DNA of 64,000 bases, from sequence record NC_041878.1. One strand, given 5' to 3'. Below are positions 45,666 to 50,342 of this stretch, in pieces. A program made the position numbers and the translations under genes. The notes under the pieces are model-generated. The model worked only from the letters and a program-made list of their open reading frames with translations. It ran no database searches and had not been told where the DNA came from. The stretch's first letter is position 1. The number at the start of each line of letters is the position of its first letter.

Positions 45666-46199
45666 ATGCAGAAAAAAGAATTATTAAACGCTATTCTTGA
45701 GGCAATTGCTCCTACCGATGTTGAATCATCACACTTACAAACAATAGAACACAACGGTAAAGAACTATACATCACTTTTAAAAATGGCAGTACTTACGAG
45801 TACGATAATGTACCAGAAGCATTGGTTCGTCAAATGCTTAAAGTTGATAGTAAAGGTAAGTTCTTGTGGCGATACATTCGTGACAAATATCCGTACCGTC
45901 AAGTTAAATCAATCCCACAACATAAATTCGATACTAACCCTGATGCAGTTAAGCCACGTTTGAAATATAACGTTGATACTGGAGAATGGGAAGATGCACT
46001 TAAACCAGATGTTCTTCAAAGCGTTGAAGTTCCTGTAGGTCATGAGTTCCGTGCACCAGATGGTGACACTTATACCTTCCAGGGGAAACAATGGAAAAAT
46101 CAACGTACTGGACGAGTTGCTAAACGTGAAATAAGTCAGAAGATGACTGATATTGCGAAACGTATGATTAAGTTAAAAGGGAAAGATAATGAGATATAA
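45666..46199 (+). CDS. KTSC-domain protein
   Basis: [30 protein letters not shown]...[14 protein letters not shown]. Confidence 0.85.
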
Positions 46200-47799
46200 T
46201 CAACTTCAAGAAGCAATCATTAAAGTACCACCAGAAATTCTTAACAAGGTGAATATGTACGTATCATCGTACTTGTACTTTAAAATTAAACAGTACTTAG
46301 ATCGTTTGGATTTGTTTTTACCGCCAAACATGAATCCAGAAGAAAAAGAAAAAATTATTCAAGATGGTAAAAACACTTTAGCTAAACTACATTCGAAGTA
46401 CGGTGCTAAGAATATTTCCGCACAAACGGCAAATAACCTTCTTGGAAAATCAATTGACATTCCTTTTGATGTTGAAAAGTTCTTTTCAGAACTAAACTAT
46501 AAAGGTGTAAATCCGGGTCTGGTTTCTTTACTAAAAAACCGATTGAAACTATCACTATTGATGGTACAATCACAACAAGGTATTGCTGGTTCAAAAGAAC
46601 AATCTGGAGATTACTCATACTTAGTTACGGTTGTAGTTGGTGGTATCGGTCCACGACCATCATTCCTTGAAACTGCCAATGATATTATGAGTACTACATA
46701 TCATGAATTGCAACATATTGTTCAAGCAATGGCAATTAAGAATATTAGTCAAAACGATAAACAACTTCATCGTAATGCTGGATATAGTGATCGAGACAGT
46801 GGGGATTTGGAAGATTACTATACAAGTGGAATTGAGTATACCCCACAACTTGGAAACGTTATTGATTCTGTAAATTTGGAAATAGAAAAAAGTGTACTGA
46901 AAGATGAATTAAATCCTGATAAGAATAAAGCAATCAGTGATGCTATTCATACAGTAGTACAGAAAAGTGCTGATTCTAGGATGTTCTTAACTCACCTTTA
47001 CAGAAAGAAACCTGAATTGTATAAAAAAGCAATGTCTGCAATTTACAAGTACGTTTCTCCAATGTATGACGAGTTTAAAGAAAATGGTATTGATTACGCT
47101 TTTACAGAACTGGAACCAGAAGAACTAGAAGCTAATGTTGATGTTATGCTTTCTGTATACAAAATGATGTATAAGAAAGATGGTTTCAAAACAGAAGCAT
47201 TTGGTCGTTCGATGGACAACATTACACAAGTAAATGTTGAGCATCTTACATGGGGAGAGAAGGTAGATTGGACAATTAAACTTACTAAAAACTCAATTCA
47301 GAAAGATGGGTATTATGTAAATATATATTCAAGCGAACCAGAATATCAAGAAATGGAAAAGTTAAACTCTAAAGAAGTTCTCAACTTATTTGGTATCATA
47401 TCAACAAATACATGGTACGATGCATCTGATATTATCGATGATATTGAATTCATCACTGGTCAACGCAAAGAAGTTACAAAAGAATCTGTTAGAGATATTA
47501 TTCAATCCTTAGAAAAAGATGCAAATCACACTGATGTACCTTTTGAAATAACTGGTGATAATACCTTTAATGCTATGGGTCATTCATTCTCTGTTGAGAA
47601 AACTGAAGATTCCCAAGATAAAGTTGATATTAATATGGATGGTGATAAGAAAACATTCTATGTTTGGACATTAAAACAATTTCTAATTGCATTCCAAATG
47701 TTGATTCGTTTCTATAGTAACTATCCAGATGAAGTTAGTCAAATACTCGACAAGGATACTTTGTATGTTGAGGTTATGGCAAGTTTAAGGAGATTATAA
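46189..47799 (+). CDS. HExxH (zincin-like) domain protein with capsid-targeting-like N-terminus
   Basis: Starts MRYNQLQEA; YHELQHIVQ with downstream YYTSGIEY; paralogous to the middle of the next ORF. Confidence 0.6.
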
Positions 47800-50342
47800 T
47801 GCCAAGTAAATCAAAGGCACAAGCACACTTAATGGCAGCGGCAGCACACAATCCAGAGATTGCAAAAGATGCAGGTGTTCCACAAGGTGTTGCACATGAT
47901 TTTAATCAAGCTGATAAAAAAGAAGGAACCTTGAAAAAAGGTTCCGATGTTCCAGAACATGTTAACGAGGAAGTACTTGATGAAGCTAGTGGTGTAGGTA
48001 TTTTAAAAGTACCACCAACATTACTAAAACAATTTCAGCGTATTGTTTGTTCCATACTTCTAACAATGGGAGTTATGCGTCAAAATGAATTATCTGAAAC
48101 TGGTTATGATGAACAGGCTAAGGCGTTAAACACGTTCCTAAAACGTTATCAAAACAAATATAATGCATCAGTACTATCACAACCTGCACTAAAGAAATAT
48201 ATTAATAGTATTAGTACTGTTAAAGTAGATACTGATACTGTCTTTAATGAACTACCGCAAAGTCTTCAGAAGCGGGAAGGGGTAAAAGATTCATTAGCAA
48301 ATTTAAAATTACGTATTTTATTAAGTAATCAGGTTTCTGGTATATATGGAAGCAGTCAAGACAATCACTCTGGTAGCTTGAACATTCAAACAATTGCAAT
48401 TCCATCATATTACCATGATTTCAAAAATAGAACCGTTGAAGAAATTGCAAATACAATGTCTCGTGTACCAGGAACGGTAGAACATGAATTACAACATGCA
48501 ATGCAAAATGCAGTACTTGGTCGTTTGAACAAACATGATAAGCAAGTTGAAATGAAACCTGGTTATACAGATCATGGCGATGCATATTATGCAAGTGGTG
48601 TTGAGTTTGGTACACAAGTAAACGATTTAGCAAACTATGCTAAAAATTGGCTTAACCAAAATCCTGATGAAATCACTGGTTCCAAAACAAAAGATATAAG
48701 CAATGCTATTAAGTATGCTTTATCTACATATAAAGGAACTATAATCCAAGCATTAAGAAAGTACAAACACGATGACCGAGCTAATAAAGCTATGAAGTTA
48801 ATTTATCGTGAAGTTAGTAATTTCTACGAGAATGAATTTGCTGATCAAAGTGACAGCGGTGAGTTGGATAGAACTGAGAAAGATGATTTCGAAGATACTG
48901 AAAACAACGCAAGAATGTTGGAATATCCTGAAGCTGGTGATTCACTATTAGGTGATTTGTGGCTATCTATAAACCGATACTACGGTGAGGAACCAAGAAT
49001 TATGGGATATTATGATGATATTAAAGAACTTATTTTCAAACGTGATTATGGTGAAATTATTTTCGAACCAGCTTCTAATGGTGGTGCTCATATGTATGTT
49101 CGAGTACCTGGAAATAAAGAGAAATCATTCCATATAGAATTAAGACCCGAAGATCTAAAGGGGATAATTCCAGATGTGGCATATTTTACTAACCTACAAA
49201 CAATACATAAACTTAAAGATAAAATTGAACAAAACCAAATCCCTAACGTAAATTTAGAAAGTGCATATTACGATCTTAATGATGTAATAGAAATGGAAGA
49301 AATGTTCAATTCTGATTCTAATAAAAAAGTTTCTACACAGTACGATGATGAAGATGGGAATGTATGGGTATCGTTTAATGGTGCTCGTGACCATATGTAT
49401 ATTCAGGAAGGTGGTAAAGATTATTTTGTTGGATACGGTGATGAAATGTCTCGCTGTAAACAAAAAGATTTCAAGAAGTGTTTTGAGAAGCTAATTAGTT
49501 TCTATTTCAGTGCCGATACGACAGCCAAAATGATAAACAAGATGTTGAAACACATCACACAAGATCAGTTTACAGTTGAATCTATCGAACAATATATTGA
49601 TTACTTACATGAATTATATTCTTCAAAAAATGAAGAACCCGTTGAGGAATCAAGTATGCGTAGTTTAGCCGATATTGTTCAGAATGCAGAACTTGAGCAT
49701 GATATTGATGATGCGAATGATCAAGAACTTATTAACAAAGGTGTACTTGACGAAGATACTGATGAACAAGAATATGTTCTTCAAGGTAAACCAGTTGAAC
49801 CAGGTCAAACTTCTGCTCCTGTAAATGCAGGAACAAGTACTGAGAGATTATCTGAAATGCCTCTAAAATATGATTCATTTATGGGTATGGACCCACAGAT
49901 ATATGTTGATAAGAGTGCACGTAAAAGTCCATATAAGAACATGAAACCAGTTAAAGATCATGGTGAATGGACAACTTATAGAGGACCAGATGGATATATG
50001 GCTTATGACAATGATACTGGTGAAGCAATTGCCGCTATCGAAGGTCATGAACATCACGGATGGTTTAACGTTGATGTAACTGCATCTAGTCGTAATGTCA
50101 AAGGTGTAGTATATCAAATGTTTATGGATATTGTAAAAATCGAAGGTACGCCAATCCTAAGCGGAAGGTTACAGTCGGATGACGCAATTAAATTCTGGAA
50201 ACGATTAATTCAATCACACAAAGTATTCGTTGTTGCTAATGATGAAGTACTACAACAGGCTACACCAGAAAAGTTCCACAAGTACTGGAGTGATGAAGAA
50301 GGTTCTCCACAATCGCAGTTCCAATTCTTACTAGTCAAATAA
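47799..50342 (+). CDS. Multidomain protein: short N-terminal module, HExxH domain, GNAT-like C-terminal domain
   Basis: [19 protein letters not shown]; GILKVPPTLL, EHELQHAMQ, YYASGVEF; C-terminal KGVVYQMF...ILSGRLQSDDAIKFWKRL. Confidence 0.6.
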   Translation: MPSKSKAQAHLMAAAAHNPEIAKDAGVPQGVAHDFNQADKKEGTLKKGSDVPEHVNEEVLDEASGVGILKVPPTLLKQFQRIVCSILLTMGVMRQNELSETGYDEQAKALNTFLKRYQNKYNASVLSQPALKKYINSISTVKVDTDTVFNELPQSLQKREGVKDSLANLKLRILLSNQVSGIYGSSQDNHSGSLNIQTIAIPSYYHDFKNRTVEEIANTMSRVPGTVEHELQHAMQNAVLGRLNKHDKQVEMKPGYTDHGDAYYASGVEFGTQVNDLANYAKNWLNQNPDEITGSKTKDISNAIKYALSTYKGTIIQALRKYKHDDRANKAMKLIYREVSNFYENEFADQSDSGELDRTEKDDFEDTENNARMLEYPEAGDSLLGDLWLSINRYYGEEPRIMGYYDDIKELIFKRDYGEIIFEPASNGGAHMYVRVPGNKEKSFHIELRPEDLKGIIPDVAYFTNLQTIHKLKDKIEQNQIPNVNLESAYYDLNDVIEMEEMFNSDSNKKVSTQYDDEDGNVWVSFNGARDHMYIQEGGKDYFVGYGDEMSRCKQKDFKKCFEKLISFYFSADTTAKMINKMLKHITQDQFTVESIEQYIDYLHELYSSKNEEPVEESSMRSLADIVQNAELEHDIDDANDQELINKGVLDEDTDEQEYVLQGKPVEPGQTSAPVNAGTSTERLSEMPLKYDSFMGMDPQIYVDKSARKSPYKNMKPVKDHGEWTTYRGPDGYMAYDNDTGEAIAAIEGHEHHGWFNVDVTASSRNVKGVVYQMFMDIVKIEGTPILSGRLQSDDAIKFWKRLIQSHKVFVVANDEVLQQATPEKFHKYWSDEEGSPQSQFQFLLVK

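Follow-up and report, generated by a model that had tools for sequence, protein, structure and literature searches.

The adjoining genes CBB_321 and CBB_322, which lie in a 64,000-nucleotide stretch of sequence record NC_041878.1 (hereafter the window), encode paralogous proteins that share a conserved domain of about 290 residues, predicted to adopt a zincin-like fold and preceded in both by a motif of the kind cut by the T4 protease gp21. With moderate confidence, we propose that both are head-internal proteins belonging to a capsid assembly line of the T4 type, carried as ejection-type cargo. The window derives from Pectobacterium phage vB_PcaM_CBB (KU574722), a RaK2-like jumbo myovirus of 378 kb, to which the 4,154-nt region of the two genes is 100% identical; in Cronobacter phage GAP32, the same region is 83.5% identical.

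The proteins bear on an open question, namely which counter-defence activities phages bring pre-made and which they express after entry; pre-made activities are relevant to beating fast immunity, such as cyclic-oligonucleotide-based antiphage signaling systems (CBASS), restriction and abortive infection. The ingredients are known: ejection proteins that are directed by a capsid-targeting sequence (CTS) and processed by gp21, and polyvalent zincin hubs. What is new is that one conserved, unannotated module unites them and counts Acb1 among its cargo, an arrangement of which we found no description in the literature searched. The family links T4 capsid targeting and gp21 processing, polyvalent zincin hubs, and the HExxH domain found in cargo of extracellular contractile injection systems (eCIS), which have hitherto been treated apart.

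A conserved domain with a predicted zincin core

An original prediction, made from the letters of this DNA, described two open reading frames (ORFs) sharing an HExxH domain that starts after a glutamate motif. The frames are as given there, BLASTP aligns residues 9-294 of CBB_321 with 67-344 of CBB_322 (25% identity over 304 columns, E 2e-14), and the motifs are present in both. In the shared domain of ~290 residues, HExQHxxQ is followed 39 residues on by YxxSGxE; these are represented by HELQH at residues 172-176 of CBB_321 and 229-233 of CBB_322, and by YYTSGIE (210-216) and YYASGVE (263-269), respectively. When the two paralogue families are merged into one alignment of 31 sequences, reaching down to 22% identity, the invariant positions (CBB_321 numbering) are E8, P14, S27, L102, G134, H172, E173, Q175, H176, Q179, Y210, G214, E216 and Q220.

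The domain is widespread. A profile search of 1.84 billion representatives retrieved 206 clusters at E<=0.001, mostly stand-alone proteins of ~290 residues, such that the family comprises at least 206 clusters at 50% identity. Among 141 distant domain matches, the two histidines and the glutamate of HExxH are retained in 141/141, the glutamine three residues on (Q+3) in 139/140, the tyrosine in 140/140, and the downstream glutamate in 139/139. When 96 stand-alone members are aligned with MAFFT (mean column identity 18%), H, E, H, Y and E are likewise unchanged, and the catalytic-type residues are invariant over about 170 sequences in all.

AlphaFold2 (AF2) models of the paralogues agree in topology. 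For CBB_321 (predicted local distance difference test score, pLDDT, 85.3; predicted template-modeling score, pTM, 0.74), helix 109-115 is followed by strands 120-126, 134-139 and 143-149, then by helix 159-186 carrying HELQH, and by a further helix, 214-237, which begins around E216 and so places this residue at its N-terminal end. In CBB_322, strands 170-176, 184-188 and 194-200 precede helix 213-243, which carries HELQH, and the next helix starts at 272, three residues past E269. The zincin core as described by Iyer et al. (PMC5512222) consists of a three-stranded sheet flanked by a helix, the HExxH helix, and a second helix with a glutamate ligand. The predicted topology is that of this core, and we consider a zincin-like fold of the shared domain likely.

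Structural neighbors of the catalytic core support this assignment. Residues 112-300 of CBB_321 returned LPD23, Peptidase_M48 (twice), DUF6055, Peptidase_M61 and DUF4932 as named neighbors in the ESM Atlas, with template-modeling (TM) scores of 0.39-0.43; an independent search with residues 165-350 of CBB_322 returned LPD23, Peptidase_M78 (three times), M48 and SprT-like (twice), the small SprT models giving TM 0.51 and 0.56. For both paralogues, the Atlas neighbors that have names are almost exclusively zincin families or LPD23, which scored 0.86-0.88 with TM about 0.4. Normalized by the query, TM is ~0.35-0.43 for the minimal-zincin neighbors; normalized by the small SprT-like models, it is 0.51-0.56 over ~90 residues. 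Weak matches to DUF4932 and DUF6782 on residues 107-307 of CBB_321 also emerged from the AFDB clusters, and eCIS_core, SprT-like, DUF6782 (‘putative metallopeptidase’) and DUF6055 recur as sub-threshold Pfam matches in the 96 relatives.

Searches of Pfam with CBB_321 and CBB_322 themselves gave nothing above noise, and searches of PDB sequences with the single proteins and three profiles gave no meaningful match. Whole-model searches with CBB_321 (Foldseek against the PDB, AFDB clusters, VIA-align, Atlas) returned no zincin above background, the zincin domain probably being masked by the multi-domain models. The zincin reading of the original prediction thus holds as to predicted topology and invariant residues, which fit the gluzincin type, but has no significant database match to a known zincin behind it; the domain likely represents a distinct, unannotated gluzincin-like family. 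That it is also an active metallopeptidase appears to us reasonably likely from the models and the conservation.

A boundary motif of the gp21 type

Each copy of the domain is entered through a characteristic boundary. In CBB_321, LQE at residues 6-8 stands directly before the domain, and the N-terminal MRYNQLQE, noted earlier as CTS-like, indeed has the form of a propeptide ending in a gp21-type L-x-E, a hallmark of the whole family. In CBB_322, residues 60-76 read LDE followed by ASGVGILKVPPTLL, giving the junction LDE62↓ASGVGILKVP (the arrow marks the candidate cut). The pattern [LIVMF]xE[GAS]x[ILVM][KRQNT][VIL]P occurs in 90/140 distant homologues, mostly starting at residue 6-9, as in the N termini MKILQVINE↓GIIRVP and MKFSTFLNE↓GLIKLP. 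In the profile alignment of the boundary, P3 is L (70) or I (14) in 86 sequences, P1 is E in 88/88, and the proline is kept in 91/91.

T4 gp21 cuts after L/I-x-E, the propeptides (CTS) of the T4 internal proteins (IPs) measure 10-19 residues, and Alt of T4 loses a 7-residue propeptide and is also cut C-terminally (PMC9026906). At the level of sequence, the P3/P1 pattern of the boundary is the gp21 cleavage logo. A protease to match is encoded in the same genome: CBB_255 is of the gp21 type (Peptidase_S77), with 2,231 tblastn relatives, including T4-likes, and the annotated gp23-type capsid precursor of CBB also has L-x-E sites in its N-terminal region. We regard cleavage at L-x-E by a gp21-type protease as likely.

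Where another domain stands in front of the zincin, the boundary motif is kept at the internal junction, for example LDE↓GLIKVP at residue 299 of P0121, and P0113 has two copies, one before each of its tandem zincins. Because the motif is retained at the internal boundaries of fusions, and in CBB_322, it belongs to the module. The conserved E8 may serve the fold or the cleavage site, two roles that conservation does not separate.

Over the 536 residues of CBB_321, [LI]xE occurs just once, at the N terminus, where 6.4 occurrences would be expected by composition (p 0.004), and in its family 93 are observed against 157 expected, a depletion common to the closest relatives that fades in distant ones. 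The CBB_322 family is not clearly depleted (198 observed, 222 expected), for which reason depletion counts as weak evidence of exposure to the protease.

CBB_322 in the virion

The original prediction had both proteins packaged, which stands for CBB_322. In the published MS of purified CBB virions (Buttimer et al.), this protein, which the peptide report lists as ‘CBB+3_004’ (index offset +9), is represented by 30 unique peptides, the maximum of that study, at 43.6% coverage, and homologues are present in GAP32 and RaK2 virions. The product of the preceding gene, CBB_320, gave 4 peptides and was located in the 21-23 kDa gel slice.

The distribution of the CBB_322 peptides is informative. Residues 1-70 yielded no peptide in any of 13 gel slices, all three tryptic peptides expected from 7-70 being absent; the published search was fully tryptic, which puts neo-N-terminal peptides outside its scope. 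The first peptide seen is VPPTLLK (71-77). Slice 03, home to a 68.9-kDa protein (22 peptides, 47.8% coverage), contained 25 peptides and 87 spectra of CBB_322 spanning at least 71-577, and 0/4 of the detected C-terminal peptides. Peptides of 769-847 appear first in slice 05 and are present in 05, 07, 08, 10 and 11; in slice 08, which also holds a 30.5-kDa protein, CBB_322 is represented by three C-terminal peptides only, and slice 09 holds proteins of 21-23 kDa. The calculated masses are 63.7 kDa for residues 63-617, 26.0 kDa for 618-847, and 18.5 kDa for 687-847.

Candidate sites LDE62↓A, VEE617↓S, LDE652↓D and LSE686↓M all fall in segments with pLDDT <50, and E62, E617, S618, E686 and P688 are invariant in 26 CBB_322 homologues; the remaining five [LI]xE motifs sit in confidently folded regions. 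The peptide and slice pattern, the masses, and the disordered, conserved sites suggest that the propeptide is removed and that the N- and C-terminal fragments are separated, with all of the fragments kept in the particle. Packaging of CBB_322, and its processing into separate fragments, we consider very likely.

Shared layout and a GNAT-like domain

The likeness of the paralogues extends well beyond the HExxH domain. Profile-profile alignment with hhalign (profiles of 25 homologues of CBB_321 and 26 of CBB_322, down to ~30% identity, all from RaK2-like phages or metagenomes) matches residues 10-511 of CBB_321 to 68-571 of CBB_322 over 461 columns, with a probability of 99.95% and E 1.9e-38, and the two remain colinear after the HExxH domain. 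Their AF2 models have the same order of elements, with two modules, each comprising some five strands and three helices. CBB_321 thus corresponds to the N-fragment of CBB_322 (about 68-571), and the divergent C-terminal specificity domains of the original prediction have to be abandoned: the regions after the zincin are made of the same two alpha/beta modules. Residues 318-425 of CBB_321 gave a generic PsiB/frataxin-like structural match, from which no function is read. HMMs (hidden Markov models) of all four CBB_322 segments found no further paralogues in the window.

What CBB_322 has in addition is a 62-residue N-terminal extension, a disordered cleavable linker and a C-terminal GNAT-like domain. 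With residues ~700-847, Foldseek against the PDB matched PCAF (1cm0, E 6e-3, prob 1.0) as well as GCN5, ElaA, RimI and AcrVA5 (prob 0.87-1.0), the last an anti-CRISPR acetyltransferase, and N-acetyltransferase clusters of the AFDB gave TM values, normalized by hit, of 0.5-0.58. The domain is GNAT-like by predicted fold only, and acetyltransferase activity is putative.

A natural variant illustrates the modularity of CBB_322. In related phages the gene order is ClpS, KTSC, CBB_321 homologue, a protein of 240-252 residues, and gyrB. In the 240-252-residue protein (P0225, P0222), encoded in the variant locus L008:1332-3681 of a related metagenomic phage contig, the propeptide of CBB_322 runs directly into the linker and the GNAT-like domain, with the zincin and both alpha/beta modules precisely absent. 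PHROGs also has a separate 263-residue family for the GNAT-like part, which occurs as a stand-alone gene product too. Either a CBB_321-like module was inserted in frame between propeptide and cargo, or it was precisely lost.

Relatives fused to anti-defence enzymes

Elsewhere in the family, the zincin module is joined to enzymes of counter-defence (Table 1). Its relatives fuse it to Acb1, ART-PolyVal (ART, ADP-ribosyltransferase), a 2H phosphoesterase and eCIS_core, which bears out the earlier link to the zincins of polyvalent proteins; tandem zincins occur in P0102, P0113 and P0206. The partner set matches the repertoire of polyvalent, injected proteins (PMC5512222, PMC7824862). By its fusion to known anti-defence enzymes, the module resembles a carrier for head-loaded proteins. 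CBB_322 itself, combining zincin-like and GNAT-like domains, has a polyvalent layout, whereas CBB_321 and most relatives are not polyvalent.

The contigs that carry the relatives are of the T4-like or jumbo-phage kind, on which rIIB, RNA ligase and ART-PolyVal are neighbors, and the cultured carriers are jumbo phages: XacN1, Xoo-sp13, Salicola SCTP-2, Stenotrophomonas CM1/RAS14, 121Q, and Yersinia fHe-Yen9-03/04. In Escherichia phage 121Q, gene 50 (record 36135-36377), annotated ‘virion structural protein’, is a member of the zincin family; since its locus differs from that of the CBB_321/322 homologues, three or more copies are present in some RaK2-like phages.

A proposed route from prohead to host

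We envisage that the late operon CBB_320-321-322 is expressed from its predicted promoter, and that the propeptides, of 8 residues in CBB_321 and 62 in CBB_322, would target the proteins into the prohead core, by analogy with T4 CTS biology. CBB_255 would then cut after L-x-E, removing the propeptides and cutting the disordered linker of CBB_322, so that the virion would hold a zincin fragment of ~64 kDa (about 63-617) and separate GNAT-like fragments of 26 and 18 kDa. The published peptide report is consistent with fragments of these sizes; precisely where, and by which protease, the cuts are made is deduced. Upon infection the fragments would exit the head with the DNA, whereupon the zincin may cleave, and the GNAT-like domain modify, host or defence proteins. 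Ejection of the proteins, followed by action on the host, is in our view slightly favored.

Because the same module and boundary motif are fused to Acb1, ART-PolyVal, 2H and eCIS_core, the module can be seen as a hub for delivered counter-defence cargo. A bolder and more tentative extension is that ‘L/I-x-E↓(G/A)xIK(V/L)P + zincin’ forms a portable capsid-cargo cassette of T4-like and jumbo phages, a capsid counterpart of DUF4157, with the prohead protease cutting at the cassette boundaries and the zincin acting as a delivered protease against host immunity proteins. We consider this doubtful. Were it true, diverse counter-defence enzymes would be loaded into the head (Acb1 nuclease, ADP-ribosyltransferase, 2H phosphoesterase, GNAT-like), and Acb1-type enzymes would arrive pre-made with the DNA, ahead of any phage gene expression. 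A cassette working as proposed would also furnish a natural protein-loading tag for large phage capsids. The conserved boundary motif, the natural variant with and without the module, and virion MS data open to re-search provide testable handles.

Several points weigh against the reading of both proteins as processed, ejected head cargo. CBB_321, whose packaging had been predicted along with that of CBB_322, was not detected in CBB virions by the published MS, and is seen only as its GAP32 homologue. Slices 05, 07, 10 and 11 mix N- and C-part peptides of CBB_322, suggesting some degradation or alternative products; the cleavage sites are derived from absent peptides and gel-slice distribution rather than from observed neo-termini; and VEE617↓S is V-x-E, not the canonical L/I-x-E. 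The metal site H172/H176/E216 is putative, being drawn from model topology and conservation, and Zn binding and proteolysis would follow from it by inference. The acetyl-CoA pyrophosphate-binding motif of GNATs is Q/RxxGxG/A, which by eye was not seen in CBB_322, the conserved segment there being KG(V/I)(V/M)YQ; nor did the profile and 17 members find a Pfam GNAT family or a PDB sequence match. Location in the head rather than the tail, and ejection into the host, are conclusions by analogy, and the lack of clear [LI]xE depletion in the CBB_322 family, noted above, belongs here as well. Finally, an N-fragment of such high abundance would be in keeping with a structural role, too.

Alternative explanations

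The main rivals of ejected cargo are a structural or maturation role, kept alive by this abundance, and self-processing, kept alive by the extended invariant boundary motif. Under the first, CBB_321 and CBB_322 would be head-internal proteins (core, inner body, or accessory maturation peptidase) with no role in the host. CBB_322 tops the unique-peptide count, with N-fragment spectra comparable to those of major components, and the gene set is conserved and syntenic over RaK2-like phages; a different zincin conserved in group 1 jumbo phages has been suggested to serve maturation (PMC7824862), and T4 IPIII affects head assembly (PMC9026906). Yet T4 IPs are also abundant (~360 copies) and are ejected all the same (PMC9026906), and the Acb1, ART-PolyVal and 2H partners, which are host-directed or signal-degrading, make little sense in a structural module. 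Copy number and architecture vary, moreover, in that some CBB_322 genes have the module and others do not, and RaK2 is without CBB_321, as is typical of accessory conflict genes. We judge a solely structural role unlikely; if correct, it would still amount to a useful, though ordinary, re-annotation of two ‘structural proteins’.

In self-processing, the HExxH domain itself would cut its own N-terminal boundary (L-x-E↓G/A-x-IKVP) and the linker, freeing itself and its cargo in the head or after delivery. The boundary motif is longer than a gp21 site needs, (G/A)xIK(V/L)P being nearly invariant (P14 in 91/91), it accompanies every copy of the domain, internal and tandem ones included, and residues 9-20 of CBB_321 are modeled with high confidence against the domain; autoproteolytic processing has also been proposed for the zincins of polyvalent proteins (PMC5512222). 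On the other hand, the IKVP segment may be no more than the structural element with which the fold begins, and L/I at P3 with E at P1 match the T4 gp21 logo exactly. Most members are stand-alone proteins of ~290 residues with only a 6-9-residue peptide to shed, which is the classic CTS case, and the CBB major capsid protein has similar L-x-E sites near its N terminus. Self-processing, too, strikes us as improbable.

That the domain is no peptidase at all, its HExxH...E being a non-proteolytic metal site or the mark of a pseudo-enzyme and the domain only a folding or loading scaffold, would accord with the lack of significant similarity to any characterized peptidase and with the DUF4157 of eCIS cargo, which has no demonstrated catalytic role and is dispensable for loading, but is very unlikely given zincin-like topology and nearest neighbors and the strict invariance of H, E, H, Y and E in ~170 sequences diverged to ~18% column identity, which argues for catalysis or metal binding.

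Comparison with known systems

As proposed head cargo, the CBB proteins recall IPI, IPII, IPIII and Alt of T4. In both cases the N terminus is a short propeptide with L/I-x-E at its end, the genome encodes a gp21-type protease, and the proteins are present in the virion; CBB_322 also shows apparent loss of N-terminal peptides and, as in Alt, apparent processing on the C-terminal side. Alt is an ART, relatives of the CBB proteins carry ART-PolyVal, and in both cases the cargo is enzymatic and suited to host takeover or counter-defence. Unlike the T4 proteins, those of CBB are built around a zincin-like domain, much larger (61 and 96 kDa), acidic (pI ~5) rather than basic, and without sequence similarity to them; the CBB_322 propeptide has 62 residues, and ejection, established for T4, is here proposed.

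The metallopeptidase (MPTase) zincins of polyvalent proteins (PMC5512222), for example in the N4 virion RNA polymerase, have the same predicted core, form hubs with unrelated effectors, occur in tandem copies and are packaged in virions. They differ in that CBB_321 and CBB_322 have no Pfam LPD or PolyVal match even at E<=10, that no MuF-type anchor was found, that most members of the CBB family are single-domain proteins, and that each copy stands behind a T4-type protease site. Processing may therefore fall here to the prohead protease and not, as proposed for polyvalent zincins, to the zincin.

In architecture, the closest parallel is DUF4157/eCIS_core (‘PVC-metallopeptidase’). Cargo of the eCIS consists of a disordered loading peptide, DUF4157 (HExxH), a linker and an effector, with DUF4157 dispensable for loading, a layout that parallels the one described here; P0179 and P0206 even carry eCIS_core adjoining a zincin of the CBB type. 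Whereas eCIS cargo travels in the tail tube, a capsid location is proposed for CBB cargo, and the protease-site boundary is specific to the phage family. PF13699 (eCIS_core) has no match in CBB_321 or CBB_322; 5/96 stand-alone relatives match below threshold, with a best E of 0.09.

Minimal zincins (SprT-like, ImmA/IrrE (M78), M48) are the nearest named structural neighbors of the core and give weak HMM matches at the HExxH helix. SprT uses a histidine as third ligand, unlike the putative one of CBB, which is a glutamate 39 residues past the second histidine, within YxxSGxE. Among the ejection and inner-body proteins of phiKZ-like phages (phiKZ, SPN3US), many are abundant and head-internal; a diverged gp21 homologue cuts them behind a Glu, and they enter the cell by ejection (PMC9026906). 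However, their motif is S/A-x-E, they belong to unrelated families, and a zincin hub has not been described for them.

Gene order and operon

On the same strand, CBB_321 and CBB_322 are preceded by genes for IF-3 (CBB_318), a ClpS-domain protein (CBB_319) and the KTSC protein CBB_320, and followed by those for a small DUF3307 membrane protein and topoisomerase II subunits. CBB_320 and CBB_321 overlap by 11 nt. The translational coupling predicted for CBB_321 and CBB_322 is borne out in so far as stop and start overlap in TAATG, with AAGGAG 7 nt upstream. Late control had been claimed as well: it agrees with a T4-like late promoter listed by the authors of the phage as Porf_320 (record 231,630-231,643; Table S7 of PMC5259590), and is to that extent itself a prediction. 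The promoter lies in the loop and 3' side of a terminator-like hairpin behind the ClpS gene, and the next predicted promoter, Porf_324, at window 50752-50780, is past the hairpin that follows CBB_323 (PMC5259590). With a hairpin after the ClpS gene, a predicted late promoter and a terminator at the far end, CBB_320-321-322(-323) looks like one late operon on the strength of these motif predictions.

Table 1. Features of the CBB_321/CBB_322 locus (positions in the window) and fusion partners in relatives
Feature	Position	Strand	Match	Remarks
CBB_321	46189-47799	+		536 aa, 61 kDa; annotated ‘structural protein’
CBB_321 propeptide MRYNQLQE	46189..46212	+		CTS-like, ends in L-x-E; E8 invariant in 25 homologues
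CBB_321 zincin-like domain (residues 9-300)	46213..47088	+		Predicted; HELQH 46702-46716; YYTSGIE 46816-46836 with putative third ligand E216
CBB_321 C-terminal half (residues 316-536)	47134..47796	+		Two alpha/beta modules; first a generic PsiB/frataxin-like sandwich fold
CBB_322	47799-50342	+		847 aa, 96 kDa; annotated ‘structural protein’
CBB_322 propeptide (residues 1-62)	47799..47984	+	phrog_16759	Ends LDE, then A; predicted disordered, pLDDT <60 for 1-67
CBB_322 zincin-like domain (residues 63-352)	47985..48854	+		Predicted; HELQH 48483-48497; E269 48603-48605
CBB_322 middle region (residues 360-610)	48876..49628	+		Two alpha/beta modules; AF2 pLDDT ~90; aligned with CBB_321 up to residue 571
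CBB_322 disordered linker (residues 612-693)	49632..49877	+		pLDDT <50; candidate sites VEE617↓SS, LDE652↓D, LSE686↓MP
CBB_322 C-terminal GNAT-like domain (residues 694-847)	49878..50339	+		Fold matches; no sequence-level GNAT match
Predicted T4-like late promoter ATAAATACTCAAAA	45630..45643	+		Upstream of CBB_320; would serve operon CBB_320-321-322(-323)
CBB_320, KTSC-domain virion protein	45666..46199	+	Pfam KTSC 1.2e-13	First operon gene
Intrinsic-terminator-like hairpin and T-run	50722..50745	+		Closes operon behind small membrane-protein gene CBB_323
Acb1 (anti-CBASS) upstream of zincin	P0121 (L002:8001-9746)		1e-39	Junction LDE↓GLIKVP
2'-5' RNA ligase / LigT-type 2H phosphoesterase (2_5_RNA_ligase2)	P0113 (L007:336-3344)		2.8e-10	1002 aa; followed by two tandem zincins
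ART-PolyVal fused to zincin module	P0161		7.8e-16	
eCIS_core next to zincin module	P0179		24 bits	
eCIS_core next to zincin module	P0206		22.3 bits	Weak

Further observations at the locus

The CBB_320 protein begins with a 12-residue CTS-like peptide, behind which an I-x-E site is followed by AIAP; CBB_320 may join the set as its third packaged protein. A suspected likeness of the CBB_322 propeptide to DUF3008 was unconfirmed by Pfam and is not claimed.

The genes for IF-3 and the ClpS-domain protein stand directly 5' of the packaged-protein operon. Before the phage IF-3 gene, at window 44434-44461, is a perfect sigma-70 consensus promoter (TTGACA, 16 nt, TATAAT, with TG); situated between late-type structural genes, it indicates that early and late units are interleaved there.

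CBB_316 (window 43660-44217), which encodes a 185-residue ‘structural protein’, has TATAAATA ~25 nt upstream, and its protein starts with MENIMNNLFNAFSIKVPGQVL. The protein contains the ‘IKVPxxxL’ segment common to CBB_321 and CBB_322, without a preceding Glu and without HMM similarity to them. Among the ORFs of the window and of locus L006, this short type of motif has just three N-terminal matches.

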